Positions 34,951-52,502 of a stretch of DNA of 63,615 nt are shown one piece after another. The stretch's first letter is position 1. Each line of letters begins with the position of its first letter. The notes beneath the pieces were generated by a model. That model worked only from the letters and a program-made list of their open reading frames with translations. It was not told the origin of the DNA and searched no databases. The stretch covers positions 248,001 to 311,615 of the forward strand of contig CDROCS010001688.1 in assembly GCA_977020255.1 (NCBI GenBank), read 5' to 3'. Both the position numbers and the translations under genes were made by a program. This DNA is from Obrimoposthia wandeli (taxonomy: Eukaryota).

Positions 34951-36687
34951 CTAGAAGGCCTGTTTAAGCTTTTCGTTTATATAGAAGAAGACTCGCAAAT
35001 CTAATAAAACCATCACCACTGCAATGGTACCAACGATCGCCAGATAAAAGGTAGTCCAGAATTGAACGCCCTCATTGACCGACTTAGCAAACAAGCTCAA
35101 CTCCCTCGCGTTGGTCGGTACGGTAAAGCGTGAGTTGGCAAACTCATTACTGCAGGTCGCTTGTGCTTGGTCATAGCTCACCGCCTGGCTGGTAGCCTGA
35201 AGTTGACTTTCGCTGTCCATGCAGAGCGCAGGATACTGCTCGCTTTGACTTGCAGTGGCAAAATGGGCATAGCCATCAGAGCCCACCGACAACTTAACAT
35301 GCTGTCGACCAACGCTCGGTGTATCCAGACCGTTTCGCCAACTAAAGATGTGATTGGCAATATAGCCATCGGCATCATCGGGCAGGAACTGATCGCGACC
35401 GATAAAGTTGATACCGCACTCCAACGCCGGTCGCACTTGCGATACCGGCAGATAGTGATCCCAGGCCCAACCGCGTTTGTCTTCAACAATGGTACTGAAA
35501 CGACCCAACTCCCAAGCAGGCAGGCTTGATGGACAACCAGCAGCATAATCATGGTCATCACTGGTCTCGGGGCCCATTCGGTTCCAGATCACGCTACGGT
35601 AGTCGGTATTGTTACCGCAATCACCGTTAAAGGCGAAGAACATGATCTGCTTGCCGTCATCGAGTAACTCTTTGGTCGTCAAAGATTCCGGCGCATAGTT
35701 ACAGCCATTGCCTGCATCTCGAAAGACCATATTGCCGAAGGTTTCAATGATCTCTCGGGCTACATCCTGCTCATAGCCTTCATTCTTGCTAGAGTGCTCA
35801 AACTTGACATAGATAAACTGCCCGGAATTGACCCTCAGCCAATTTTTGATCTCAGACATGACCCGCACAAAACTGGTGCCGCTGGTATCGACCTTGTGTT
35901 TGAGTGTACGACCGACAACATCAATCTCAATCGTCCGCACTCCAGACTCCAACTGCTCGACAATAGAGGTGGACTGATTGGGTTTAGCACTAGCCCAGTA
36001 GTAATCGCCCGAGTTATAGGAGTTATGAGTACCCATCCAAGTAGCTTTGTAGATGGGTGAGTAGGTTACTAGCTCGTTCTGCGCCGCCATCTGCTCCTGT
36101 AGCGTTGAAGGCTGACGGGTATGAACCCTAAAACTGTCAGCCTCATCATTGAAGCCATGGTCTTTAAGGTTGCCGGATGAGCGCATCAGGGTTACGCTAT
36201 TATTATTGAAATTGGGGTAACTATACAAAGTCGCGCCAGCATTGCCGCTAAGAAACACTGAACTCATCTCGTTGGTTAGATCAGCTATCCCCATATCAGC
36301 GATCCCCTCTCCCGCCATCGTGCACATCGGAGTACCGGCATAGCCTGAATCTTGATAGAGGCAAGCAAAATCATTGGTGGTTCTTTCCAATAATTCGAAT
36401 GAGGAAATGCTGTCATTCAGTCTTTTAAACAGAAAAGTATCCTGCATCACCGTGGTGGACTTGCCCCGTTGGTTGCCATGTTCATAAACTTTGACATAGG
36501 CGTTGCCATAAAGTCGAATCGCCGTGACCTTATCGTTCATACTACTTGGCATATTCTGCTGGCCCAGCTGCTGAGTACACCATTTTTGCCCAAAAAAGTT
36601 TTCATCTTCGTAGAAGCACACTTTGGCATCCTCCGCCCAGGCGGTGCCAGATAACAATACAGATGCTATCAATATAGTTTTTTTCAT
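34951..36687 (-). CDS. Secreted PI-PLC X-domain phosphodiesterase with N-terminal beta/gamma-crystallin repeats
   Basis: Signal peptide MKKTILIASVLLSGTAWA; four crystallin Greek-key motifs; GTHNSYNS, QLESGVRTIEIDV. Confidence 0.82.
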   Translation of the reverse strand: MKKTILIASVLLSGTAWAEDAKVCFYEDENFFGQKWCTQQLGQQNMPSSMNDKVTAIRLYGNAYVKVYEHGNQRGKSTTVMQDTFLFKRLNDSISSFELLERTTNDFACLYQDSGYAGTPMCTMAGEGIADMGIADLTNEMSSVFLSGNAGATLYSYPNFNNNSVTLMRSSGNLKDHGFNDEADSFRVHTRQPSTLQEQMAAQNELVTYSPIYKATWMGTHNSYNSGDYYWASAKPNQSTSIVEQLESGVRTIEIDVVGRTLKHKVDTSGTSFVRVMSEIKNWLRVNSGQFIYVKFEHSSKNEGYEQDVAREIIETFGNMVFRDAGNGCNYAPESLTTKELLDDGKQIMFFAFNGDCGNNTDYRSVIWNRMGPETSDDHDYAAGCPSSLPAWELGRFSTIVEDKRGWAWDHYLPVSQVRPALECGINFIGRDQFLPDDADGYIANHIFSWRNGLDTPSVGRQHVKLSVGSDGYAHFATASQSEQYPALCMDSESQLQATSQAVSYDQAQATCSNEFANSRFTVPTNARELSLFAKSVNEGVQFWTTFYLAIVGTIAVVMVLLDLRVFFYINEKLKQAF

Positions 36688-37090
36688 CAGAGATCCTGCT
36701 CTTGTAGTTAATGAACAGAGTAACGACAACATACCCATTGCTTCAGCGCATTGCCGCAAGGTAGATATGAGAAAACACGCACCCTGGGTGCTGAATCTGA
36801 TCTTAGAGACACAATGTCGATGTGGCACCACGCAAGGTGCATGAACTTCCTGCTGTCACATTTGCAGCCAAGACATTCGCACGTCATTACAATCTTTTTC
36901 TGCGATGCCGAGCTCGGTTTGAGCCCAGCAGAGCAAGATGTACTGTACCTGCCATAGCTGAAAACAATCAAAAGTACGGCTCTCCAGCATTAGACTTAAT
37001 ATTTTCAGCAACTTGTAGGCAGGTAGCATCATTGTATTACTAACATGTTTAGTTACGGGGTTAATGTTGAACGCTTAAATACCATCAATA

Positions 37091-37951
37091 CTATTTTGGC
37101 TCGACATTTGAAATAACAGATAGATGATCAGAGGAATAAATCCCATCTTTCATGACATTGACATATTTAAATGTATTAACGCGCAATTGATCATTCACAA
37201 AGATATAATCAATGTCTTCGGTAGGCTCTTTAAAATAACCATGATATGTATATTCCTTACCGTCAATACCTTCAAATGGCTTTATAGTTGTAGACCTCGC
37301 ATCATTAAATAAACGGGTCAATGCTTCATATGAAGCAACGTCACTTCTTTCAAAGTTTAAGTCACCTAAAACAATAACTGCATCATTATCATCACCAATA
37401 ATTTCTTTGGCTTTCTTACTTAATAATTTAGCACTCTGCTGCCGTGCGACTTTACCAATATGATCAAAATGAGCATTAAATACGAGTACACGTTTACTTG
37501 ACTCTTTGTCTTCAAGTCTTACCCAGCTTGTAATACGAGTTAGATCTGCATCCCAACCAACACTCGCGACAACCTCTGGGGTTTCAGAAAGCCAAAATGT
37601 ACCACCACCAAGTTTTACATACTTATCAGCCCTGTAAAAAATTGGGACGGCCTCGCCTTTTGTTTTACCATCATCTCGCCCAACCCCAACCCAGCCATAG
37701 TTAGATAAATTTCTAGCTAAATAAATAATTTGATCATTAAAAGCTTCCTGTAAGCCAGCAATATCAATATTTTGTTCACTGAATATTGATGTCACTATTT
37801 CCTTACGATTTTCCCAAGTGTTATTTCCATCATATACACTGCCATCAACACTATCCTTACTATTTCTTATATTAAATGACATAACATTAAAGTCATCGGC
37901 AATTGCAGGTAGTGCCAGCGCAGCTAGCAGTAATATAGCTATCTTTTTCAT
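37091..37951 (-). CDS. Secreted endonuclease/exonuclease/phosphatase (EEP) family protein
   Basis: Signal peptide; MSFNIR, GLQEA, NAHFDH, LGDLN, IDYIFV, SDHLSV. Confidence 0.92.
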   Translation of the reverse strand: MKKIAILLLAALALPAIADDFNVMSFNIRNSKDSVDGSVYDGNNTWENRKEIVTSIFSEQNIDIAGLQEAFNDQIIYLARNLSNYGWVGVGRDDGKTKGEAVPIFYRADKYVKLGGGTFWLSETPEVVASVGWDADLTRITSWVRLEDKESSKRVLVFNAHFDHIGKVARQQSAKLLSKKAKEIIGDDNDAVIVLGDLNFERSDVASYEALTRLFNDARSTTIKPFEGIDGKEYTYHGYFKEPTEDIDYIFVNDQLRVNTFKYVNVMKDGIYSSDHLSVISNVEPK

Positions 37952-38091
37952 TAGTTAATTTCCTTATTTCAATTGAATTTTAAATATAAACACTCGAAAC
38001 ATAATGCTGTGCCCGCCTGAGCTGGTGAGCCGAAAATACGGCTCATAAGTAACTTAGCGGGCTTATAGGTCAATCAGTAAGTTCTGGCGGC

Positions 38092-40206
38092 TTAGTTGAT
38101 AGAATCTAAACGCTTCAGCTCAGGTGCCAGATCGGTCAGCTCGCCTTTTTCAAGATCGATCATAAAGTGACGGCTGGCATTACCGTTGGCAAACTTGGTC
38201 AAAATACCAAACAGGCTACCAAAACGCTGCTTAAAGACCTCGCCAAAAGCGCTGGAAGCATCAATTGGCTTTGAACGTAAATCTTTGGCCAGTGTTTGTG
38301 CCAACAGGCTGTACTGAGGAATGCGCTGCTTCTCGATATCTTTAAAAGCAAGCTCATCGGCATTTCTCAAGCGATAGAAATCAACCGCAAAATCAAAGCC
38401 GTTCCAGCGCGCAAAGTCGTCCAGAGTCAGGTTCGACTGTTTTGCCAGCTCAGATGCCTTAATGCTGGCTTGCTGCCAAGCTTGTGCAAACTCGGGATCA
38501 TTGATGTCTGCTGGTGCGAAGTAGGTTTCGCCCTCACCTTGCTGACAGATTTCAATAGCCTGTTGGCCTTTGGTCAGTGTTGCAATTTGCTCATTGCTAA
38601 TGGAACTGTCCAGCTGGCTTAAGATCAGCATGCTTTTACCATCCAAGGCAAACAGCATCTGTTTTAAGTCACAAGGCCACTCTTCGGGAAGGAAACGCAT
38701 CCGAGTAAGCTCGGTAATGTGCCAGTTAGTAAACTCATAATAATTTTTGGCACTGAGCACTTCTTTATTCCATATTTCATCGGCGTCAATCTGCTTAAGG
38801 TGATCCCACTCCTTTGCATAGTGTTCAAACAATTCGTTAAAGCGCGGAACTTCATCCAAAATCACGGTTTCCACTTCAACCTGCTGCTGATTTTTAAAAG
38901 TTAGGAGTTTATAAGCAGGCACATAAGCCGCCATTGACGGTGCCTGAACATTAAACAAGAAGGTGTTATCATCGTAGTACTTAACCCCGGTATCGTTAAA
39001 GTGCATGTGACCACCGACATGAAGCTTGATGCCGGTTTGTGCCAAAGCTTTACTGACATCTTCTCTCGGCGAGCGTTTCAGCTGGAAGTTACCTTGTCCG
39101 AAGATGTCTGCAATGGTTTCTGCGGCGCCGTTATAAAACTCGGTCATCGGGAAGTGACTGAACGTAACAAGGATCTTATCTTGATCTTCAGCTCGCTTGA
39201 CGACATCACGCATCCAGTCAATAACTTGCTGTTTATGGGTCAGCATTTTGTTATAGCCTGCATTGCCAGAACCTGAATAATTATCGCCCGCTTCGGGGTT
39301 GCTAGTATCAGCATTGGCTTTTGGTACATACACGTTGGCATCAATAGCAAGTAACCATAGGCCGGGGGTTGGCTCCACCAGATAACTGGTGTCTGGCACG
39401 CTCATGCATGAGGTGTAGCCCTCTTTTTTATATTTTCCCCCCGTACCCTGATTGCAAATTTCATACTGGCGCTTCTGGTAATCAGCCGCTTTGCTTGCTT
39501 TCGTAAAACTGTAGCTTTTTTGATTGTAGTCTGAATACGGCGTTTCCCAATATACATTGGACTTTTGTGGGGAAAAACCATAATCAGCTAATGATGACAT
39601 CAGGCCTTCATAACCTAATTCTCGGATCTCTTCACTACATACCGTCGGTAGTTCATACCCAGCATCAATCACGGCAGAAACACCGTCATACCCCAGACAC
39701 TCTTTTACCCCTTTGCTAAAGATCCGCTGAGTTTTTCCATCCTCGCCTAAGAAGTCAGATTTGCCACCAGGCCGCCCAAAAGGTCTAACCGGATCATGGT
39801 TACCCGGAGCGGCAAAGAACTCAATACCGTGTTCTTTATTGTAGCGCTCCAATATTTTCTGAAGTCCGCGTACATTGACTGGCTGACCGTCATCACTGAA
39901 ATCACCTGGCAAAGCAACGTACTTAACACCACGCGCAACAGCATCATCAAGAGCCGCGATTAACGCAAAGTAATTTTCATTAAACAACCGAGTCGATGTC
40001 AATTGAGCATGCATACTTCGAATGGTTGCATTCTTACCGCTTTTGCTGTTTTTAGGCCCTTGATATGAACCGTCTTCAAACGAGCCGTACACATCATGGA
40101 AGTGGATATCTGGCATAAATGCTACTTTCATTTCTTTCGCGACAGCAGAGGTACAGACCCCGCAGGCGATCATGACAGCCATGCTCAGTTTCGTTATATT
40201 TTTCAT
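38092..40206 (-). CDS. Secreted calcineurin-like metallophosphoesterase
   Basis: Signal peptide; PDIHFHD, PGDFSDDG, PGNHD, FSHFP, GGHMH. Confidence 0.88.
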   Translation of the reverse strand: MKNITKLSMAVMIACGVCTSAVAKEMKVAFMPDIHFHDVYGSFEDGSYQGPKNSKSGKNATIRSMHAQLTSTRLFNENYFALIAALDDAVARGVKYVALPGDFSDDGQPVNVRGLQKILERYNKEHGIEFFAAPGNHDPVRPFGRPGGKSDFLGEDGKTQRIFSKGVKECLGYDGVSAVIDAGYELPTVCSEEIRELGYEGLMSSLADYGFSPQKSNVYWETPYSDYNQKSYSFTKASKAADYQKRQYEICNQGTGGKYKKEGYTSCMSVPDTSYLVEPTPGLWLLAIDANVYVPKANADTSNPEAGDNYSGSGNAGYNKMLTHKQQVIDWMRDVVKRAEDQDKILVTFSHFPMTEFYNGAAETIADIFGQGNFQLKRSPREDVSKALAQTGIKLHVGGHMHFNDTGVKYYDDNTFLFNVQAPSMAAYVPAYKLLTFKNQQQVEVETVILDEVPRFNELFEHYAKEWDHLKQIDADEIWNKEVLSAKNYYEFTNWHITELTRMRFLPEEWPCDLKQMLFALDGKSMLILSQLDSSISNEQIATLTKGQQAIEICQQGEGETYFAPADINDPEFAQAWQQASIKASELAKQSNLTLDDFARWNGFDFAVDFYRLRNADELAFKDIEKQRIPQYSLLAQTLAKDLRSKPIDASSAFGEVFKQRFGSLFGILTKFANGNASRHFMIDLEKGELTDLAPELKRLDSIN

Positions 40207-40236: not shown

Positions 40237-41358
40237 TTAAGCTTTAGTGATATTAAAACTTGGCTTGTCCGACTTTTTTGTTATTTTTGTCGGCATTTCA
40301 CCTTTGAAAACTAACAATGAACCTAAGGTGACAATGGCCGACCCCACAGCAATTGCCACAACATAAGTCAACCAGTTTTCCACCGCCAGCCAGCCATAAA
40401 AACCAGAGATTGGAGCACGGTTAACCGCACCAAAACCAACAGCCATCGCCGAGCCCACAGCTGAGCCAATCACATTTATAATAATTATTTTTGGGTTTGC
40501 TAAGGCAAAAGGAATCGCACCTTCAGAGACACCAATAAGCCCCATAAGAGTGGACGCCTTGCCAGCTTCTTGTAATGACTCAGGAAAACGGGACTTCCAG
40601 ATCAAAGTAGCAACACCAATGCCGATAGGTGGGATAATAATGGCAACCTGTGCAGCTGTATTCGGGTCATAAATTCCGGAGGCCAGCATCGCCATTGCCG
40701 TAGTCACCGCCGCCTTGTTAATTGGACCACCCAGGTCAAACCCCACCATGCCGCCGATAATGGCTGCCAAAATAACTTTGTTGGTACCTGACATGCTGAG
40801 CAACCAAGCTTCTAGACCACGGTTCATTGCGGCAAGAGGGTCACCAATCACATACATCATGATGATACATGCCAATAATGTACCGCCGACTGGGATAATA
40901 AAAATGGGCCCTGCAGACGCCAGCGATTGCGGTAGCTTAATGCTTTTCGCAAGGTAGCGGACAATATAGCCAGCCACAAAACCTGCGGCTAATGCACCCA
41001 GGAAGCCTGTACCCAGATCTTTTGCCAACAAACCCGCAATCATACCTGGACCAATACCCGGCTTATCGGCTAACGAGTATGCGATATAACCCGCCACCAC
41101 GGGCAGCATTAAGCTAAGCGCCATTCCGCCGAATCCATCAAAGGCATGGAACATCCTGATCAGCGCATTACCCGCATCAGCATGACTGCCATCCCAGATA
41201 TTATCGATGCCATAAAATGAAGCGCCAATACGGGATATCCCCATAATTACGGCACCAGCAATGATAAAAGGCAGCATATAAGATACGCCTGTCATTATTG
41301 CTTGTTTTATTTCAACACCCGTTGAATTTCTTTTTTTATTTACATTAAACTTAACCAT
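40237..41358 (-). CDS. PTS fructose-family EIIC (cassette 2)
   Basis: MTGVSYMLPF, GFDLGGPINKAA, GVSEGAIPF. Confidence 0.92.
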   Translation of the reverse strand: MVKFNVNKKRNSTGVEIKQAIMTGVSYMLPFIIAGAVIMGISRIGASFYGIDNIWDGSHADAGNALIRMFHAFDGFGGMALSLMLPVVAGYIAYSLADKPGIGPGMIAGLLAKDLGTGFLGALAAGFVAGYIVRYLAKSIKLPQSLASAGPIFIIPVGGTLLACIIMMYVIGDPLAAMNRGLEAWLLSMSGTNKVILAAIIGGMVGFDLGGPINKAAVTTAMAMLASGIYDPNTAAQVAIIIPPIGIGVATLIWKSRFPESLQEAGKASTLMGLIGVSEGAIPFALANPKIIIINVIGSAVGSAMAVGFGAVNRAPISGFYGWLAVENWLTYVVAIAVGSAIVTLGSLLVFKGEMPTKITKKSDKPSFNITKA

Positions 41359-41665
41359 TATTAATCGCCTCACATAAAGCTTCAAAAACAGCCTCACCAT
41401 GTTTAATTGGATCCGATACTGCGCATTCTAATATCGGCAACCCAACAAACCTCCCTTTATCATTAATTGCCACTTCCGAAGCAATAATAATACCATCCGC
41501 ACGTTTCATATCCTCTTCAGTTATTACATTTTCAGCCCCCATACTACCCTGAGTTTCCACCTTAACCTCATGACCTAATGACTCACCAATTATTGATAGT
41601 GACTCGGCAGCCATATAAGTATGAGCTACGCCCGTCGGGCACGCAGCAACGCAAACAAAAAACAT
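41351..41665 (-). CDS. PTS fructose-family EIIB (cassette 2)
   Basis: ACPTGVAHTYMAAE, KVETQGS. Confidence 0.95.
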   Translation of the reverse strand: MFFVCVAACPTGVAHTYMAAESLSIIGESLGHEVKVETQGSMGAENVITEEDMKRADGIIIASEVAINDKGRFVGLPILECAVSDPIKHGEAVFEALCEAINNG

Positions 41666-41686
41666 AGTTCTTTCCTTATATTATTT

Positions 41687-42193
41687 TTATTTTTTCAACA
41701 AGACATAGAAAAAGCACAGCCGTAATATTACTGGCTGTGCTTTTGCATTTACTAATAATGATTTGATTAAAACGGTGACAGGGTAACAGTTAACAAAACA
41801 AGGTATAACACTATTATAAGCAGGTTCACCTGCATTACGATAACAAGTCAACATCTGACTTGAAGCCGCATTAATACAGGCGTGAGCCAATAAGGAGCGC
41901 CTTACAGCACAAAGCTTAACGACCATTACCTTTGAAGAAGTAACCAGATCAACTTTCTTTTTTTCAAACGGATAACGATATCGAGAAGATAATTGATGAC
42001 CAACACTACTCCACAACGACTCCCACAGAGCGCTTACCTCATCTAAGTCATTCTTTGTACTGTCAATATTACAATCAAGTTGAGGTGGTATAAATAAAAA
42101 TGCCATAACTTCTGAAAGCAGATATTGGCACACAGCTAGAAAACTAGCTAAATGCTTTTTGAGTGTTTTCAATACATAAAATGACATACTCAT
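41687..42193 (-). CDS. Unknown protein X2 (168 aa), first gene of PTS cassette 2
   Basis: Open frame in AT-rich DNA, SD-like GGTGGG, 21 nt before EIIB; shares motifs with 49382-49903. Confidence 0.6.
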   Translation of the reverse strand: MSMSFYVLKTLKKHLASFLAVCQYLLSEVMAFLFIPPQLDCNIDSTKNDLDEVSALWESLWSSVGHQLSSRYRYPFEKKKVDLVTSSKVMVVKLCAVRRSLLAHACINAASSQMLTCYRNAGEPAYNSVIPCFVNCYPVTVLIKSLLVNAKAQPVILRLCFFYVLLKK

Positions 42194-42423
42194 TAATATA
42201 CCCACCACTGCTGTTCAACTTATTAAAACAATAGTAACAAACATTTTTAACATATTACCCAACAACAGTCACATTTTTGATTTAATAAAGCCAACAAACA
42301 GATAAATATTTATTCATTAGCTAGCCGCATTATAAATGCCATGCATTAATCACAGCTTCAATAATCACCTTATTAATTTAATCGAAATTAGTTTTAGCCC
42401 ATTACTGTATTAATTTATTTTAA

Positions 42424-42666
42424 TTACACCGATGACTTAATTATTTCTTGATTTAAACCTTTCAACTTTAAAAATAATACAATAGTTGCCAAAAACAAAG
42501 TTACTCCATTTCCTATAATCAACGGAATATCTTTCGACATAACTCCGTATACCAACCAACAAAACACCCCAAATACAAACATCATATACATTGCCAGTGA
42601 AATACCCGTGGTGTCTTTTGTCTTTATTGTATGGATCACTTGCGGTAAAAGATTCTTCTGAATCAC
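42424..42666 (-). pseudogene. SemiSWEET (PQ-loop) sugar transporter lacking TM1
   Basis: LPQVIHTIKTKDTTGISLAMY...WLVYG...IIGNGVT; the PQ motif lies only 7 residues from a GTG start with no SD. Confidence 0.7.
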
Positions 42667-42672
42667 GATTAT

Positions 42673-45207
42673 TTATGCCATTTCTTTAAACAAACAACCT
42701 CTTAACAGTTCCATCGTTTGTTCAGTTTTTTCTGTTTCCTCCATGTCGGTTTGCATCAGCTGTTGTCTAAAATCGCTATGCATTAACTTTCGTGCCAATT
42801 TCGAAAAAATACTCATATGACTACCACCTTTATCATGACTGGACATTGTCAACATGATCACCGTCGATACACACTCGTTCTCAACGTCGTTCCATACGAT
42901 GGGTTCTGATAAATGAGCAATAGAGATGCTATTGTGCGTTACGTGTTCAGACTTACAATGTGGTATGGCGACACCAAATCCTAGTGATGTAGCAAAAATT
43001 TCTTCACGATCCCAAATGGCTTGCTCTGCCGCATCACCGCGAATCACCCGCCCTTGAATTTCCAAATTATCAGTCAACATTTTAATCACACTCGTTTTAT
43101 CTTTAGCTTCACAATGTATGACTAGGCGTTCATCCAATATTTCCGGCTGACTTTGTTGTTGCCAGAAAGCGTCAATACACTCTCTTACCTCATCAGCGGT
43201 TTCTTTACTCACCACCTCGACTAATAAGCATTGGCAGGCTTCACTGTCAAGAATGTGGAGTTGCGATCGTAACATTGCAATATTCGGAGAAGACAAGCTG
43301 ATTTCATCAAACCCCATTGCCATCAGTAATGGCAGAGCACGTCTGTCACTGGCCATTTCACCGCAAATGCCTAATTCAAGTCCGGAACGTTTAGCCGTTA
43401 CTGCAATATCCCGAAGAAAAGCAATAAATCCAGGATTCAAACTGTCATAAAGCAATTTGATTTTCGTATTTCCCCGATCACATGCCATAAAGTATTGAGT
43501 CAGGTCGTTACTACCGATGGAAACAAAGTCGATCCAACTAGAGATTTTTTCCAGAAAATACAGAGCTGATGGCACTTCAACCATGATCCCAAGCCGCCAC
43601 TTACCAATTGACTGGCCTTCCATCATTAACTGTTCGGCACATTGGTGGCATAGCTGATAAATCCACTTTACCTCTTCAACACAAGAGACCATCGGAATCA
43701 TGATATCGATGTCCCCCAATGCGGTAGCCCGTAGTAATGCACGCAACTGACTTTCAATCATAGCCTGATACTGTGGATACATACGCACTGCACGGTAGCC
43801 TAAGAACGGATTCTCTTCTTGTGGTAATTCCAGATATGCTAATGGCTTATCCCCGCCAATATCGAGTGTTCTTATAATGACTTGCTTCCCATTAGCGGCC
43901 TTTACAACTTCACTGTAAATCTCAAATTGTTCCTGCTCTGTGGGTGCTTGAGGGTGATCCATAAACAACATTTCAGTACGGAATAAGCCGATCCCTTCGG
44001 CTCCTCGACTAAAAGCCATTTCTGCTTCCAATCCAACAGCTATATTGGCGTACAAGGCCATTGACTGACCGTCTTTAGTTATTCCTTTAGTCGTCATAAA
44101 AGGAGCCAATAAGTCATTTTTGGCTACACACTTATGCGCTTCCAACTTATAGAACTCTGTAACACGATGATCTGGTTCGCGGATCAAGCAGCCGTATTGT
44201 GCATCCAGAACAATCCATTCAGAGCCATAAATAAACGATTGTAAATTTGGTATCCCCGTCAATACAGGAATACCAAATGAACGAGCCAAGATTACCGTAT
44301 GGGAAGTTTGCCCCGCATGGGCTAGAACGATCCCTTTTAGTAGTGACTTATCGAAACCCAGTAATTCACTCGGTGTTAGGTTCTCAGCAATCACTATACT
44401 ATTGGAAGTTAGCACCACTGGCTTTTTCAGCAACTCACCAACGACCAAACAGGCTAGCTGAGTACACAGGTCTTCAATATCTAATGCTCGCTCTTTCATA
44501 TAGCTACTTTGGCTATTAAGTAAAGGAGCTTTAAGCTCATCAGCTGCAACAGCAATAGCTTTAAGAGTGTTGGTTTGCTTAGCATGTTTTAACAAGGTTT
44601 CACTAAAAACGGTATCGTCAGCAATCTGCAAGTGAGCCTGCAAAATAGCGCGCTCTTCTTTTGCTTTCGAATCTACAGCTGCAAGAGCTGAAAACAACTG
44701 TTGTTGTAGTTTTTCCAGACCGACGAGTAAATGATCTTTAACGGTTTCGCTTAACTGCTGTTCGGCCTCATCGGCAAGTTGATGCAAGTTGATCTGACTG
44801 CAAATGATGGGCTTGCCTTGCCCAATCCCTTTTGACGCGATACTACCGCGTACATAACACGGATTTGACGCTTTTAATGAAACTGGGAGTGACAACAAGC
44901 CGTCATTAAGTTCAATACATTCAATCGGTTCGTCACAGTACGAAAATTCCTGAGTAATAAAATGATGAGTATGATCATAAGCGGCTAACTCATCCTTACC
45001 GTCAAAAATGAACTGACAAACATCATCCAACACTGCATCAACACCAATCAACGACAACACGCTTTTAGCATTAGCGGTTATCCCTTTAGTTCGATTAACC
45101 AAGGAAATTTGACACTGGAACGCCTTTGTACGGCTCTCTATTTCAGCGGCTGGTCTAGCATGAATACCATTTACTAATTCATTTTTAAATTCAAATTGTC
45201 TTGTCAT
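42673..45207 (-). CDS. ptsA: Multiphosphoryl transfer protein HPr-EI-EIIA(Fru) (PtsA/FrwA/FryA type)
   Basis: GIHARPA (HPr), TSHTVILARS (EI), GLFRTEMLF, SIGSNDLTQY, GVAIPHCK (EIIA). Confidence 0.9.
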   Translation of the reverse strand: MTRQFEFKNELVNGIHARPAAEIESRTKAFQCQISLVNRTKGITANAKSVLSLIGVDAVLDDVCQFIFDGKDELAAYDHTHHFITQEFSYCDEPIECIELNDGLLSLPVSLKASNPCYVRGSIASKGIGQGKPIICSQINLHQLADEAEQQLSETVKDHLLVGLEKLQQQLFSALAAVDSKAKEERAILQAHLQIADDTVFSETLLKHAKQTNTLKAIAVAADELKAPLLNSQSSYMKERALDIEDLCTQLACLVVGELLKKPVVLTSNSIVIAENLTPSELLGFDKSLLKGIVLAHAGQTSHTVILARSFGIPVLTGIPNLQSFIYGSEWIVLDAQYGCLIREPDHRVTEFYKLEAHKCVAKNDLLAPFMTTKGITKDGQSMALYANIAVGLEAEMAFSRGAEGIGLFRTEMLFMDHPQAPTEQEQFEIYSEVVKAANGKQVIIRTLDIGGDKPLAYLELPQEENPFLGYRAVRMYPQYQAMIESQLRALLRATALGDIDIMIPMVSCVEEVKWIYQLCHQCAEQLMMEGQSIGKWRLGIMVEVPSALYFLEKISSWIDFVSIGSNDLTQYFMACDRGNTKIKLLYDSLNPGFIAFLRDIAVTAKRSGLELGICGEMASDRRALPLLMAMGFDEISLSSPNIAMLRSQLHILDSEACQCLLVEVVSKETADEVRECIDAFWQQQSQPEILDERLVIHCEAKDKTSVIKMLTDNLEIQGRVIRGDAAEQAIWDREEIFATSLGFGVAIPHCKSEHVTHNSISIAHLSEPIVWNDVENECVSTVIMLTMSSHDKGGSHMSIFSKLARKLMHSDFRQQLMQTDMEETEKTEQTMELLRGCLFKEMA

Positions 45208-45298
45208 AGCAGTACCTAAATATTTCCGTTTACATAGTGACGAACAAAGCCGCTCACCATCAATCTGATGGTGAAGGCTTGGCGCTAACAGGGGGGAA

Positions 45299-47929
45299 TT
45301 ACTTACTTCGCGTTTTGCACATTCTCAGGGCAATCAACCCTTGAGGAGGAATTATGGAAGAGCTGGTTGCCTTACCGATTGGCTGTTCCATACCATTGGC
45401 AATCTCCACTTGCCAACCGGAAGGAAGATCACCCAGTTCAGTTGGCTGCATCCCGCTATTTAATAATCTAAAAATGACTGCATCAGTGTCATCCTCAGTG
45501 GTTTTGATGGCACTTACCGCTAATTCAGGATGATCAAAAACCATTAAGCTGAAGCATTCAGGAGCCTCAAACAAAGGTGGAGCAATCATGAACCGCTGCA
45601 CGATGCCATTATGTAAAGTTAGCGGCGCTGTTAGCCAATGTTTAGCCCGATAACACAAACCTGCTTCCATCGCTCTCCCCTTAAATGGGTACAAAGCCAA
45701 ACGGAATGATAATGGCTGCTTAAGCTGTGAATCTGGGCTTGCATCAGGCAAACCAGATAAACGACCCGGACGGTATTTCAACTCTGGCTTACCAACATAA
45801 CCAACGGCTCTGAACAAAGTGATGGCAATAGATTCATGGTACTGCTGATATTCACGGATCCCATCAGTTAAGATAGCGATACCACCCTGCTCAGTCTCAC
45901 CTGCCACCACACTTTGCATCGGGTAAATTGCTACTGGGCAAGATGTCCATTCCTGCTCTTGCCACACAGATAAAGCCTGCTCATCATTGCCGCGGCGGAT
46001 AAGGCCAATAGGCTGATCAGCGATGGTTTCTTGACCAAGAAAATTACCATTAACGTGTAATTGCAATCGATGATCATCAACCTGGTTGTCTAGATGGATA
46101 TGGATCTCGATTTGATCACTGCCCTTTTCAAGAGACAATTCCATCACCGCAGTTTGTTCTGTCGTGCACAGTTTATCAGCCCTCTCCTGTAGGTTATTAG
46201 GCAAGTTCACTTGATAGCTGATACGAATCGTGGAACGTAATTCCCCCTGTGACACCTTGATATCATTAAAGTTAGCCTGTAAAACAATTTGATAGTCTTT
46301 GTACGGTTCAGAGAAATCATAGTTGTCGCCATCATCCCCGCCATCAACCAGTGTGAGTAAATCTTCCCACTGCTCACCCGACACCGTATTAGTAAGAGAA
46401 ATTTTGCCAGCGGTATCAACATTGACAGACAGATACTCGTTTTGAATCATCTGTAACTGATTTTGATCTCTAGCGGATTCAGCATTCCCATCTATATCGG
46501 CCTCTTTATCAGCTAAACGTTCGACCATCAGGCTACGATAACCACATGCTGGCAACGCATGCAAAGAAGCAATCATGCGGTGTCGATACCACGATTTAAA
46601 GCGTTCATCACCCAGAATGGTTGGATCTTGGACAATCGCATTAATATCAACCAGCTGACAATCAATAGAGTGAACGTCTACCAGATCATCACCATCATGC
46701 AGCACGAACTGTCGAGTTGGTAGCACAAGATCTAGCTCGACCATCGCATCACGCTGGTAAGGTAGAGGATTAAAGGCAAGCACAAATTCCCCCTCAAGAC
46801 CTTTCGTAGACGCATCAGCCAGCTGCTTAAGAGTAATATCTTTTAAGCGTTCAGCATTTTCTCGAACAGCTTGTATTCGTGCCAGCACTTGTCGATTAAC
46901 AGAGTCCGTATTACATCCACCGATCGAATCATGGGCATGACTTTGCATAAGCTGCTTCCAATTCTTCTCCATCAGACCATAAGGGTATTTCATCCCTAAG
47001 CTATTCGCGACCGTTAGCAATGGCTCCAACTGATTAACTATCAAGCTTTCAACACTGCTATTTAGCTTTTTAATATCGTAACGAGTAGAATAAATTCCAC
47101 GGTGGATCCGGCTATATTTACCGTAAAGCATTTCACTTTCTACAACAGCCAATGGTTTATCAGTAGCCACAGAAAAATAGTCTTCAAAACTACACAGTTG
47201 ATAACTATATTGTCGTTCATCATTGGCATTGTGAATTGCAGCTACCGTTTCACTCTGCCATGGTTTCTGATCATGCCCCCCCATAAACAAGAAGTTTTCA
47301 CGTTCTCCAGGCCAGAAACGCTCAGTCATTTTCTGGTCAATTCCATCTAAATGACAATCTATAGGTTTCATGCCCTGAAAAGCGCTGTAACCAAACTCCA
47401 ATACTGCGGTTGTTACTTTACTGCCATTCGGAGCTCGCCAGATAAATTCAGTATTTTCAGTGATTCCTTCCCAGATCCCTCGCCAAAATACACATTTATC
47501 AATATCAAAATGCTGCAGGAGTTGTGGAAGCTGCTCGCTCTGACCAAACGAGTCTGGTACATAGCCCACTTTCATCACTGCACCGAAATGCTTTGCATCC
47601 CTACAACCCCAAAATAAGTTACGGAGCTGAGATTCACCATGAACAACACACTGGTCAGTTTGTGTATACCAAGGACCCACCAGCAATTTTCCGCGCTTAA
47701 CCAATTCAGTAACACGCGCTGTGTCTTCTGGTACTACGCTAAGATAATCTTCCAGCATTACCGACTGCCCATCCAGCACAAAGCAAGGCATGCCTTCATC
47801 TTGTTCAAGCTGTTCGAGAATCTGTTGCATGGTAAATACCAACAATACCTGAGACTCTTCAGTACTAAAGTACCACTCACGATCCCAGTGAGTATGTGGC
47901 ACAATATATGCTTTTTTATTCAATGACAT
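45299..47929 (-). CDS. mngB: GH38 alpha-mannosidase, MngB (mannosylglycerate-phosphate hydrolase)-like
   Basis: PHTHWDREWY, VLDGQ, GPWYTQTD, PDSFG nucleophile motif, AHDSIGGC; no signal peptide. Symbol denotes homology only; substrate unproven. Confidence 0.85.
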   Translation of the reverse strand: MSLNKKAYIVPHTHWDREWYFSTEESQVLLVFTMQQILEQLEQDEGMPCFVLDGQSVMLEDYLSVVPEDTARVTELVKRGKLLVGPWYTQTDQCVVHGESQLRNLFWGCRDAKHFGAVMKVGYVPDSFGQSEQLPQLLQHFDIDKCVFWRGIWEGITENTEFIWRAPNGSKVTTAVLEFGYSAFQGMKPIDCHLDGIDQKMTERFWPGERENFLFMGGHDQKPWQSETVAAIHNANDERQYSYQLCSFEDYFSVATDKPLAVVESEMLYGKYSRIHRGIYSTRYDIKKLNSSVESLIVNQLEPLLTVANSLGMKYPYGLMEKNWKQLMQSHAHDSIGGCNTDSVNRQVLARIQAVRENAERLKDITLKQLADASTKGLEGEFVLAFNPLPYQRDAMVELDLVLPTRQFVLHDGDDLVDVHSIDCQLVDINAIVQDPTILGDERFKSWYRHRMIASLHALPACGYRSLMVERLADKEADIDGNAESARDQNQLQMIQNEYLSVNVDTAGKISLTNTVSGEQWEDLLTLVDGGDDGDNYDFSEPYKDYQIVLQANFNDIKVSQGELRSTIRISYQVNLPNNLQERADKLCTTEQTAVMELSLEKGSDQIEIHIHLDNQVDDHRLQLHVNGNFLGQETIADQPIGLIRRGNDEQALSVWQEQEWTSCPVAIYPMQSVVAGETEQGGIAILTDGIREYQQYHESIAITLFRAVGYVGKPELKYRPGRLSGLPDASPDSQLKQPLSFRLALYPFKGRAMEAGLCYRAKHWLTAPLTLHNGIVQRFMIAPPLFEAPECFSLMVFDHPELAVSAIKTTEDDTDAVIFRLLNSGMQPTELGDLPSGWQVEIANGMEQPIGKATSSSIIPPQGLIALRMCKTRSK

Positions 47930-47940
47930 TGCTCGGTCCT

Positions 47941-49044
47941 CTATAGTGATTCTGTGTATTTGCTTTGGGTCTCTTCCATTGCCTGATTTTTCATATACTG
48001 GCGCTTCATGAGCACCGATGTCCCCAGCACGACGAAAACAACACCAGATGCAATTGAAAGCAGGTATAAGAAGAAGTTTGAAGATAAAACAAGAGCTAAA
48101 ATCCCCGCGGCAGGAGCCTCAACAATCGAATCAAACATGATAACCATCGAAGCTGCAATTGCGCTGCCAATAGTGTTAATCACAATTAATGCAGGATTGG
48201 CAAGAATGAATGGAATAGCCCCTTCACTGATTCCGACACAAGACATCATCATTGCCGCACGCCCATTATCTTGCAGCTCTTTGGTATAGTATTTTTTCGC
48301 CACAATTGTCGAAACACCAATACCAAACGGAGCAACCATAATCGCGATATGCGAAGCCGTTACAGGCTCATAAATCCCTTGGGCGAATAAGCCAAGACTC
48401 ACCGTAATCGCCGCTTTGTTTATCGGCCCACCCAAGTCAAAGCCAACCATGGCGCCAAGTACTGCCGCCATCAATATTTTGTTACCACCAGACATATCCA
48501 CCAACCAGTTTTCCAAACCTGTATTGAGTGCAATGAGCGGATAACCCACGATATATTTCATAACAAAAAGAACAATTGCAGTGCCTAATAGTGGAATTAT
48601 TACCATTGGCAATAAACTACGAAAATCTTTAGGTAATTTGATATTCGCTAGCATCCAGCGAACTAAATAACCAACCATCAAACCACCAAGTAATGCACCG
48701 AGAAATCCCATCTGCATATCGCGAGCTAACATCCCTGCCATTAACCCAGGTGCAATTGCTGGTTTTCCAGCTAAACCAAAACCAACAAAAGCGGCAATAA
48801 CTGGAAATAAGAGTGTTAATCCATATAAACCAAATATTTTCAAATCATTAATTATTTGGGCTAGAAAGGAATCACTTTCTTTTAAATCAACACCAATAAG
48901 CGTTTCAAATAAAGAACCAAATGCTAATAGCATGCCACCAGCAACAATAACAGGAATCATATATGACACTCCTGTCATCAAGGCTTCTCTTAACCTATCA
49001 ATTTCTGTTTTTTTCGTTTTTAATAGTAGGGCCATGGTATTCAT
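47941..49044 (-). CDS. PTS fructose-family EIIC (cassette 1)
   Basis: MTGVSYMIPV, GFDLGGPINKAA, GISEGAIPF. Confidence 0.92.
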   Translation of the reverse strand: MNTMALLLKTKKTEIDRLREALMTGVSYMIPVIVAGGMLLAFGSLFETLIGVDLKESDSFLAQIINDLKIFGLYGLTLLFPVIAAFVGFGLAGKPAIAPGLMAGMLARDMQMGFLGALLGGLMVGYLVRWMLANIKLPKDFRSLLPMVIIPLLGTAIVLFVMKYIVGYPLIALNTGLENWLVDMSGGNKILMAAVLGAMVGFDLGGPINKAAITVSLGLFAQGIYEPVTASHIAIMVAPFGIGVSTIVAKKYYTKELQDNGRAAMMMSCVGISEGAIPFILANPALIVINTIGSAIAASMVIMFDSIVEAPAAGILALVLSSNFFLYLLSIASGVVFVVLGTSVLMKRQYMKNQAMEETQSKYTESL

Positions 49045-49067
49045 CCTTTTTATTTTTATTATTATTA

Positions 49068-49379
49068 TTAATTATTTATTATATGTATCATGGTTTCATA
49101 TACTGCTGCTGATTGTTTAATTGGATCTGCTACAGAACATTCCAAAGTTTTTAAGTTTTCAAACCTCTCCATTCCATCGATGGCAATTTCAGCAGCGATT
49201 ATCGCGCCATCAGCCCGTTCGACATCTTCTAATGTGATCTCATTGTCGATTCCGGTACTACCTTGAGTCTCGACTTTCACTTCCCAGTTATGCTCTTTAC
49301 CAAGCACTTCCAACGCTTCTGCTGCCATATAAGTGTGGGCAATCCCTGTTGGACAAGCAGCGACACAAACAATAAACAT
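49068..49379 (-). CDS. PTS fructose-family EIIB (cassette 1)
   Basis: ACPTGIAHTYMAAE, KVETQGS. Confidence 0.95.
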   Translation of the reverse strand: MFIVCVAACPTGIAHTYMAAEALEVLGKEHNWEVKVETQGSTGIDNEITLEDVERADGAIIAAEIAIDGMERFENLKTLECSVADPIKQSAAVYETMIHIINN

Positions 49380-49381
49380 AT

Positions 49382-49903
49382 TTACCTCGTTAACAATCTA
49401 CTGACTGTTGATTTATTAAAAACAAAAAAAACAGCAGCCACCTTAAGATGACTGCTGTTCAAATGATTGATACTAAATGATTTTGCATTAAGAATATGAC
49501 TAAACAAATTAATAGACAAATTTCCTAACATCACGCTGTTTCCCGGCGCATAGCGATAGAATAGCACCATGGAACTCGCTGAAACTTGTTCTACGAAATG
49601 TAGATAAGTCAGTGATAGTACAGAAAGCAACGTTCTTACATTTGCTTGATAAGATAAGAAATTACGACTCCAGCGCAGAACGTTCTCACCATACCAGTGA
49701 TGTACTTTCTTGCCAATTAACTCACCAAGGTTGATATAAATCTGGTTGTAGTTTGAAGCTAATTCATCTAGCTCTTCTTCAGTATTAGTGATTAAGTTTT
49801 CATTGCTATGAATACATACACACGAATAAATAGCGTTGACCAGAACGTTTAATACGCTCTGGAAAAACACTTTTATATTTAATTCGCTTGAATTCATTTT
49901 CAT
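49382..49903 (-). CDS. Unknown protein X1 (173 aa), first gene of PTS cassette 1
   Basis: SD AGGGG; stop codon 2 nt before the EIIB start; motif similarity to X2. Confidence 0.65.
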   Translation of the reverse strand: MKMNSSELNIKVFFQSVLNVLVNAIYSCVCIHSNENLITNTEEELDELASNYNQIYINLGELIGKKVHHWYGENVLRWSRNFLSYQANVRTLLSVLSLTYLHFVEQVSASSMVLFYRYAPGNSVMLGNLSINLFSHILNAKSFSINHLNSSHLKVAAVFFVFNKSTVSRLLTR

Positions 49904-49950
49904 TAAAACCCCTATGAAGAATATTTATAATAAACAAAAAATAAAGACAT

Positions 49951-49972
49951 GTATGTGAAGTAATTCACATTT
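49951..49972. promoter_or_regulatory. CRP-cAMP binding site
   Basis: gtaTGTGA-agtaat-TCACAttt, perfect core upstream of the PTS operon. Confidence 0.85.
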
Positions 49973-52174: not shown

Positions 52175-52239
52175 CTAATGGGGATTGTCATTCATTGTCT
52201 GAACTAAATATGAGATGATCTTTTCGTAGTATATAAAAA

Positions 52240-52285
52240 AGCCCTATTCAATATCAGCTAGATTAAGCGGCTATTGAATAGGGCT
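52240..52285 (-). terminator. Terminator/RNase III-type hairpin enclosing the arfA stop codon
   Basis: 14-bp arms 52240-52253 and 52272-52285, U-tract after the stem on the minus strand. Confidence 0.8.
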
Positions 52286-52502
52286 CCTGCCCTTTATATT
52301 TGTCCTTTCGCTGAAAGCTTCCTTTTCCTTTTTTCGCTTTTACCACACGTGTTGCGAACAATTTACTGGTAACAACAGCTTTTAGTGCATTATCTCTAAT
52401 CGTTCCTCTACCAAACTCCGTATCTGTGATTTTTAGCTCTAACTGTGGAAAATCAACACTTTCTTTTTGTCTGTATTGCTTCAATTTACGTTTCTTAGGC
52501 AT
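52263..52502 (-). CDS. arfA: Alternative ribosome-rescue factor A
   Basis: GTIRDNALKA..LF.TRVVKAKKGKGSFQRK. Confidence 0.9.
   Translation of the reverse strand: MPKKRKLKQYRQKESVDFPQLELKITDTEFGRGTIRDNALKAVVTSKLFATRVVKAKKGKGSFQRKDKYKGQEPYSIAA

Follow-up and report, generated by a model that had tools for sequence, protein, structure and literature searches.

Paralogous leader genes with terminator hairpins inside their reading frames head the operons of a Fru-family phosphotransferase island and may gate its transcription

In a 63,615-nucleotide (nt) stretch of DNA from Obrimoposthia wandeli (GenBank assembly GCA_977020255.1, contig CDROCS010001688.1, positions 248,001 to 311,615 of the forward strand; hereafter the window, whose numbering is used throughout), an island of sugar phosphotransferase system (PTS) genes contains two open reading frames (ORFs), X1 and X2, each directly before a pair of Fru-type EIIB and EIIC genes. 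Both ORFs carry, close to their 3' ends and within the coding sequence, a hairpin followed by a T-run in the manner of an intrinsic terminator. Our favoured reading, to which we give a little under an even chance, is that the X genes are promoter-proximal gate genes controlling their operons by ribosome-dependent attenuation at the in-frame terminator. The textbook regulation of PTS sugar operons is by repressors, PRD activators or BglG-type antiterminators. This island, which comprises two permeases, a GH38 enzyme, a private HPr-EI-EIIA protein and secreted phosphoesterases, has no such regulators; instead, its operons are headed by two long leader genes, paralogs with terminators set into their coding sequences, and this arrangement is kept in five genera. 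What would be new is control of the attenuation or antitermination type attached to a new protein family.

The X1 hairpin was first flagged by a pattern scan, as 14 pairs followed by T8-G-T5 (coordinates of all features are given in Table 1). For comparison, ten Photobacterium loci (L001-L010) were collected in a scan with one genome per species. A hairpin with a T-run was found inside 22 of the 22 X1 and X2 ORF ends of the window and these ten loci, with folding energies of -13.8 to -23.5 kcal/mol; the embedded terminators are followed by runs of T5-T9, and 35-45 nt separate them from the EIIB ATG. Embedded hairpins were also present in both ORFs of P. obscurum, in Enterovibrio, in Aliivibrio fischeri, in two metagenome contigs, and at the X1 position of Vibrio ponticus and Psychromonas (two in tandem). 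In the X1 type, the 14 pairs were formed in 100% of the 154 cells of an alignment of 11 sequences and four pairs showed compensatory changes, while none of 500 shuffles reached the observed score and slid controls collapsed. In the X2 type, the outer stem GCACAG/CTGTGC was invariant in nine of ten aligned loci and the inner stem was remade in each clade. Both terminator sequence types, GCACAG/CTGTGC for X2 and AGCAGCAA/TTGCTGCT for X1, are conserved far better than the protein. Synonymous-codon identity peaks in the hairpin codons at 0.76-0.89 with an amino-acid identity of 0.5-0.6, whereas the protein core shows the reverse, with an amino-acid identity of 0.8-0.9 in conserved blocks and a synonymous-codon identity of just 0.45-0.7.

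These structures account for part of the resemblance between X1 and X2. The preliminary description of this DNA had listed four motifs shared by the two ORFs. Those in the LDE and YR-x-A regions proved genuine, whereas 'NAK' and a 'late FF' did not survive as protein motifs. The X1 terminator encodes ...SSHLKVAAVFFVF..., the source of 'FF'; the X2 terminator encodes ...NAKAQ...LCFFY, in which 'NAK' corresponds to the A-tract plus the 5' arm of the hairpin and 'FF' to the T-run. Consistent with this assignment, synonymous identity is highest exactly in the hairpin codons. On these alignments, 'NAK' and 'late FF' are RNA structure rather than protein motifs, and an annotation trap is thereby corrected. 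When the X regions were searched against Rfam, only sub-threshold matches were returned, and these were due to the hairpins themselves. Two minor features were seen at the same place. Past the T-run and before the EIIB1 GAGG there is a second small hairpin, at 49386-49412 in the window and at equivalent positions in L004-L010, with 8 bp in L007 and about 4 bp in the window. The T7-T9 run, which encodes Phe-Phe (49418-49431 in the window, and in all X ORFs), forms a U-UUU-UUU heptamer that is a candidate slippery sequence and is long enough for transcriptional slippage.

The reading frame of X continues through the terminator. In every ORF carrying the hairpin, the X stop codon lies 13-135 nt past the T-run. 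In L007-L010 and in metagenome contig L014, the X ORF enters EIIB for about 30 codons, out of frame, and X-type ORFs overrun the EIIB start by 100-135 nt (L007-L010, about 18370-18520; L014, 1062-1102). To complete X there, ribosomes have to pass over the EIIB ribosome-binding site; since the X tail enters EIIB in another frame, the tail is not conserved as protein. In the window, the EIIB1 Shine-Dalgarno sequence GAGG is itself within the 3' end of X1. The spacer from an invariant proline codon at the end of the protein core to the hairpin measures 94-125 nt (Pro codon to T-run) in most X1 types and 65 nt in L014; the measurable X2 types have 108-171 nt. It is barely alignable, with indels that keep the frame and reach about 25 codons, and it is open in every lineage; by shuffling, the chance of such openness is 0.03-0.18 per lineage. 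As the spacer is barely alignable yet open everywhere, selection acts on translation continuing through the terminator and not on the encoded amino acids.

Comparative data indicate that both ORFs are translated, as had been suggested before. X1 has an AGGGG Shine-Dalgarno sequence 5 nt 5' of its ATG and a TAA stop 2 nt 5' of the EIIB1 ATG, and a plausible Shine-Dalgarno sequence is also found for X2. Homologs of X1 occur across many Photobacterium species at 45-95% identity, every one annotated as hypothetical. An X2-type ORF was found at the syntenic place in ten of ten Photobacterium loci, at 22-93% identity; between clades, X2-type ORFs are only 22-27% identical versus about 80% for EIIB2 and EIIC2. 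The ratio of nonsynonymous to synonymous substitution rates (dN/dS, Nei-Gojobori) was 0.16-0.33 for X1 over informative pairs (L004 and L006, which are nearly identical, gave 0.69) and mostly 0.24-0.51 for X2; the EIIB genes gave 0.01-0.18 for comparison. Third-position changes are in excess in the X ORFs, which run uninterrupted for 159-227 codons in more than 25 loci of five genera. The values of dN/dS below 1 support translation, and judged from these comparisons X1 and X2 are real protein-coding genes. The possibility that X DNA is a decayed or frame-shifted copy of another gene of the window was examined by tblastn with 106 window ORFs and was discarded, as only noise was returned. No third X copy was found within the window.

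X1 and X2 had been described as distant paralogs, and this was borne out at the profile level. BLASTP produced no X1-X2 alignment at E<=100. When the X1-family alignment was compared with an 11-member X2-family alignment by hhalign, about 120 collinear columns were aligned with a score of 29.7 (P 7e-4). None of 300 column shuffles of the X2 alignment reached this score (mean 12.9, standard deviation 2.4, maximum 21.5). After removal of the terminator-coded C-terminal part, the score was 25.0 versus 11.7 +/- 2.1 for shuffles (maximum 23.8, 0 of 300). On this profile comparison, X1 and X2 are distant paralogs. A merged X profile searched against 1.84 billion protein representatives retrieved only 12 clusters, all of them X family and some of them intermediate forms; the named clusters came from Photobacterium, Enterovibrio, Vibrio ponticus, Aliivibrio fischeri and Psychromonas ossibalaenae. 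Pfam and NCBIfam scans gave nothing for the 27 X family members and no match for X1 or X2 at E<=1, including MtlR (PF05068) and PRD, the known families that had been named as possible matches. A PDB profile search with the X family gave 0 matches at E<=10. The proposal of a new, unnamed family is thus supported across Pfam, NCBIfam, PDB and fold libraries and, as far as these searches reach, X is a small undescribed family of Vibrionaceae and Psychromonas. Searches of the literature turned up nothing relevant to this island or to leader genes of this kind in Photobacterium or A. fischeri.

The conserved part of the protein is its N-terminal core, whose genuine motifs are ELD-x2-A-x2-[YW]-x3-[YW] and [FC]-[YQH]-R-x-A-P / R-x-x-G-[DE]-P. 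X1 types close the core with R-x-A-P, X2 types with R-x-x-G-[DE]-P. The Pro of this ending is the sole invariant residue of the 27-sequence alignment; near-invariance extends to the Asp of ELD, one Leu, the Arg and one Phe, and the two subfamilies have no conserved His or Cys in common. Conservation falls off sharply behind a segment of about 33 residues whose last residue is the Pro, and the C-terminal third shows no constraint as protein. The A-G-E-P-A codons can form a small hairpin, but it is not kept in the L007-L010 clade, which argues that this motif is conserved at the protein level. AlphaFold2 models contained helices only for X1 (12 sequences; mean predicted local distance difference test score, pLDDT, 42) and long helices for X2 (27 sequences; pLDDT 63.5, predicted template modelling score 0.33), without a confident fold. 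Foldseek of the models against PDB and AFDB clusters returned nothing better than E of about 7, and ESM Atlas feature searches with X1 and one X2 type gave scores of 0.77 or less, which is chance level. The N-terminal helix is borderline hydrophobic, with a Kyte-Doolittle 19-residue maximum of 1.3-2.1, and in X2 types it includes Lys, Glu and Gln.

The family is confined to this PTS/GH38 island, as seen from the profile search and the gene neighbourhoods. The whole nine-gene architecture is kept in all ten Photobacterium loci, and P. obscurum has the same twin architecture as the window plus an NPP1 gene. Enterovibrio has one cassette without PtsA, and A. fischeri has one cassette in the order X-EIIB-EIIC-GH38-PtsA. 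In V. ponticus and Psychromonas ossibalaenae, an X2-type ORF stands directly before metallophosphoesterase and endonuclease/exonuclease/phosphatase (EEP) genes, without EIIB or EIIC, and a third, more divergent X subtype precedes EIIB-EIIC-GH38-PtsA. The expectation that homologs would be PTS-linked therefore held for the island as a whole but not for adjacency to EIIB/EIIC, which is absent for the X2 types of these two genera. X is thus tied to the first-cistron position in operons of the island and not to EIIB/EIIC.

Promoter sequences are in agreement with a first-cistron role. The perfect CRP site reported before X1 was confirmed as an exact match and is kept across loci, at 66-73 nt before the X1-position ATG in 14 of 15 loci and at -106 in L014; the Psychromonas box at this position reads CGTGA-N6-TCACA. 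The spacing agrees with that of a class II CRP promoter, with a probable leader of only about 15 nt. The half-site reported before X2 was likewise confirmed: its TGTGA (42269-42273 in the window) is conserved at -72 to -81 from the ATG in all 14 X2-type loci. Expression was assessed from assembled Logan contigs of metatranscriptomes, whose libraries may contain DNA. Contigs from three runs extended over X1 from 49904-49919 down to 49499-49515 with a word depth of 5-27, and no depth was found over EIIB1 or further upstream of the contig starts. The upper end of these contigs coincides with the start expected for transcription from a class II CRP promoter. A fourth run showed low depth across X1 and EIIB1. 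This pattern hints at a short abundant X1 RNA and at attenuation before EIIB1.

A translation-dependent gate is suggested by the combination of a short leader, a good Shine-Dalgarno sequence, a long ORF, an in-frame terminator that precedes the stop codon, and a Shine-Dalgarno sequence for the next gene within the ORF end. Three further observations support a gate: X is the first cistron of an operon whose short leader follows a conserved CRP box, X2 types head a phosphoesterase operon without EIIB/EIIC in two genera, and no classical regulator is nearby. RNA polymerase would reach EIIB-EIIC-GH38-PtsA (or EIIB2-EIIC2-phosphoesterases) only if a ribosome on X follows closely and so blocks formation of the terminator hairpin. 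The conserved core would be a sugar-specific sensor, either setting the pace of the ribosome as a nascent chain or acting on the terminator as mature protein. As terminated X transcripts would have no stop codon, full-length X would come only from read-through mRNA. That the hairpins terminate in vivo, that control is translational and that a signal is sensed is what we infer from the sequence features above.

Several observations weigh against such a gate. A core of 120 amino acids under purifying selection far exceeds any leader peptide known to us and would suit a trans-acting protein equally. No conserved antiterminator (alternative) structure was found between core and hairpin. The third X subtype has an embedded hairpin with T9 but lacks the R..P motif. 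The metatranscriptome contigs stop about 80 nt short of the T-run, could break by strain variation and may be DNA. Finally, the X2-type ORF of V. ponticus, which ends KPPP-stop, is the sole one without an embedded hairpin; it may be a gate variant, for example with stalling at termination or involvement of Rho. A gap of 168 nt separates this ORF from the phosphoesterase gene.

The closest precedent is the pyrBI leader (pyrL) of E. coli, likewise a leader ORF running through an intrinsic terminator. Like a pyrL-type attenuator, X has a strong predicted terminator right before the downstream genes, and its stop codon is past the T-run wherever the hairpin is present. In pyrL a close ribosome prevents the hairpin and allows transcription of the operon; for X this is our proposal. 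The pyrL product is a short non-conserved leader peptide that senses uridine triphosphate (UTP) through polymerase pausing. X differs in its 159-227 codons, its conserved 120-residue core, its paralogs, and its place at the head of sugar-PTS and phosphoesterase operons. That ribosomes suppress intragenic intrinsic terminators, which are unmasked by upstream stalling, has been confirmed with a pyrL reporter (PMC5021804). If the X gate is translational, the pyrL principle would be extended from a short UTP-sensing peptide to a conserved 120-residue sensor, and the island would offer a natural system for the study of transcription-translation coupling and of non-stop mRNA control. Since A. fischeri is genetically tractable and has a single X copy, the question is directly approachable.

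The arfA mRNA provides a second parallel, as it also has a conserved hairpin/terminator within the coding region and truncated transcripts without a stop codon, so that protein output is tied to RNA 3'-end formation. Unlike in arfA, which encodes a ribosome-rescue factor regulated by transfer-messenger RNA, the X hairpin also precedes a downstream operon, which it is proposed to gate. An arfA-like gene is located at 52234-52502, 2.3 kb upstream of X1; it would be relevant in that RNAs ending at the embedded terminators would carry no stop codon and would thus be substrates for ribosome rescue.

A rather unlikely but serious alternative is that X is a trans-acting, operon-specific regulator of new fold working at its own terminator, an analog of BglG. 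Mature X would bind the nascent RNA or the elongation complex to promote read-through, possibly under control of PTS phosphorylation, and the overlap of ORF and terminator would provide positive autoregulation. The 120-residue core under purifying selection speaks for this, as do the separate terminator types of the paralogs, each conserved far better than the protein, and the fact that, of the island-specific genes, X alone has neither an enzymatic nor a transport role and no other regulator is present. By analogy, the order of gene, terminator and EII is that of bglG-t2-bglF, likewise a one-sugar operon without a DNA-binding regulator. BglG/SacY antiterminators have an N-terminal CAT RNA-binding domain and two PRD with phosphorylatable histidines. 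In contrast, Pfam and NCBIfam scans found no CAT, PRD or known RNA-binding domain in the 27 members of X, no His or Cys is common to both subfamilies, the structural models are of low confidence and match no fold, and the terminator lies inside the ORF rather than after its stop. No conserved element resembling a ribonucleic antiterminator was recognised at the X terminators, and Rfam gave nothing at threshold. A trans-acting regulator also leaves unexplained why the frame is open through a free spacer and past the T-run in every lineage. If the gate does work in trans, X would be a new antiterminator fold.

A narrower form of ribosome-dependent control, which we consider unlikely as a specific proposal, is a nascent-chain attenuator. 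Here a folded sensor of about 85 residues would emerge while the 33-residue segment ending R-x-A-P/G-[DE]-P pauses in the exit tunnel; the substrate or a transport-active PTS component would then free the ribosome and so suppress the terminator about 110-125 nt downstream, and non-stop X would be cleared by ribosome rescue. If true, ribosome arrest would be linked to intrinsic termination, giving sugar-specific induction without a DNA-binding regulator. X shares several traits with arrest peptides and monitoring substrates (SecM, VemP, MifM, ApdA/ApdP and the RQH family; PMC10987492): it is an upstream ORF of about 160-170 residues without annotated function, its conserved stretch of about 33 residues breaks off at a near-invariant Pro with an Arg 3-5 residues before, and it shows a borderline hydrophobic N-terminal helix and several members ending in Pro-stop. 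Unlike in arrest peptides, the downstream structure is a terminator and not a hairpin hiding a Shine-Dalgarno sequence, the genes are not sec or yidC, and the N-terminal helix is no clear signal or transmembrane segment (by Kyte-Doolittle only). Assignment to the RAPP-like arrest family (RAPP/RAGP/RAPG, PMC10987492) was considered and set aside, as none of these tetrapeptides is matched exactly; X has R-[YHNF]-A-P-[GA] or R-x-x-G-[DE]-P, about 40-60 codons before the stop. The Pro-stop ends recorded were KPPP* in L019 (9001-9525), and KYPP*, TTVP* and CFSP* among L013 (389-928), L015 (8001-8684) and L012 (8001-8480).

It is improbable that X is an ordinary small protein, such as a chaperone or a membrane-associated accessory factor, with the hairpin serving as a leaky terminator for high X and low EII or as a stabilising 3' structure. 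X is indeed protein-coding and island-specific, and the borderline N-terminal helix and the long helices modelled by AlphaFold would suit such a protein. However, a terminator ahead of the stop codon would leave most X mRNAs non-stop, which is costly for an ordinary gene; the frame is preserved through a C-terminal third that is free to vary as protein; and the arrangement has been kept in two paralogs, three subtypes and five genera.

The role originally proposed for X, that of a protein binding its cognate EIIB/EIIC as an assembly factor or permease regulator, now appears quite improbable. X does stand directly before EIIB in the window and most loci, and X, EIIB and EIIC form paralogous triplets. 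Against this, the X2-type genes of V. ponticus and Psychromonas precede metallophosphoesterase-EEP genes where EIIB and EIIC are missing, the C-terminal third is without constraint, X evolves 3-10 times faster than EIIB/EIIC (16-60% versus 79-89% identity), and no structural support was obtained. Scarcely credible is the reading that X1 and X2 are no genes but chance open frames over a long untranslated leader: the low 'recognition' of X1 by a protein language model, the missing family or fold matches and the low AlphaFold confidence are what it would predict, but it is refuted by the comparative data, namely 159-227 open codons in more than 25 loci of five genera, dN/dS of 0.16-0.4 with surplus third-position change, good Shine-Dalgarno sequences, and amino-acid motifs kept while codons differ.

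The genes of the island are read on the minus strand in the order X1, EIIB1, EIIC1, GH38, HPr-EI-EIIA(Fru), SemiSWEET, X2, EIIB2, EIIC2 and then phosphoesterases. ORF calls and Pfam/NCBIfam scans upheld the coordinates and gene order first given for the two cassettes, between which the single GH38 and the single HPr-EI-EIIA genes are located. The SemiSWEET gene, absent from that account, separates the HPr-EI-EIIA gene from the X2 promoter and is kept in related islands; in P. indicum (L001) it is reduced to a weak partial match of 40% identity. Because its longest ORF reaches 50 nt into EIIB2, EIIC2 probably starts at a downstream ATG. The metallophosphoesterase is probably a distal gene of the X2 operon. 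No DNA-binding regulator gene is encoded between 27.7 and 57.3 kb of the window, in line with the earlier statement that the cluster has no conventional regulator.

Table 1. Positions of island genes, X gene elements and promoter elements in the window
Feature	Position	Strand	Basis or remark
Perfect CRP box TGTGA-N6-TCACA, upstream of X1	49954-49969	.	exact match
Putative -10 region (TATAAA) and transcription start, X1 operon	49917-49930	-	read from sequence; inferred
X1 ORF	49382-49903	-	173 aa; ORF call, homologs, dN/dS
X1 conserved core, codons 1-120, ending F-Y-R-Y-A-P	49544-49903	-	alignment
X1 terminator (predicted)	49418-49460	-	codons ~148-162; stem 11-14 bp, -20.6 kcal/mol, then T8-G-T5
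EIIB1, Fru-type PTS IIB	49068-49379	-	PF02302, TIGR00829
EIIC1, Fru-type PTS IIC	47941-49044	-	PF02378, TIGR01427
GH38 alpha-mannosidase, MngB-like	45299-47929	-	PF01074, PF09261, PF07748
Multiphosphoryl transfer protein HPr-EI-EIIA(Fru), 844 aa	42673-45207	-	PF00381, PF05524, PF00391, PF02896, PF00359 in order
SemiSWEET transporter, 80 aa	42424-42666	-	NF037968, PF03083
Imperfect CRP-like box TGTGA-N6-TTGGG, X2 promoter	42258-42273	-	TGTGATCTTTGTCTTA in other species
X2 ORF	41687-42193	-	168 aa from ATG; 173 aa from alternative GTG at 42208
X2 conserved core, codons 1-124, ending C-Y-R-N-A-G-E-P	41822-42193	-	alignment
X2 terminator (predicted)	41709-41744	-	codons ~150-162; A-tract, GCACAGCC, loop, GGCTGTGC, then T5; -19.3 kcal/mol
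EIIB2, Fru-type PTS IIB	41351-41665	-	61% identical to EIIB1
EIIC2, Fru-type PTS IIC	40237-41400	-	42% identical to EIIC1
Metallophosphoesterase, 704 aa	38092-40206	-	next after X2-type ORF in V. ponticus and Psychromonas
EEP-family protein	37091-37951	-	follows metallophosphoesterase in all islands examined

The domain matches (TIGR00829, TIGR01427, PF00381, PF02896 and PF00359) identify a Fru-family PTS with a dedicated multiphosphoryl transfer protein, and from the latter it is plausible that the island PTS is independent of the general EI/HPr, as had been proposed. The island shares Fru-type EIIB/EIIC, an MngB-like GH38 and a FryA/PtsA-type HPr-EI-EIIA with the E. coli mngAB, frw and fry systems, of which mngAB is controlled by the GntR-type MngR. 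Unlike these systems, it includes the X family, which by named matches among the 1.84 billion representatives occurs only in Vibrionaceae and Psychromonas. From the combination of GH38, a mannoside-type PTS and phosphoesterases, one may speculate that the island harvests the mannosyl-inositol-phosphate head group of a sphingolipid or phospholipid. Beyond the EEP gene, the phosphoesterase region (34951-40206) also encodes a 626-residue protein with PI-PLC-X, beta/gamma-crystallin and C-type-lectin domains, and the NPP1 (Nep1-like) gene of P. obscurum lies at the equivalent position (L011, 12192-12986).

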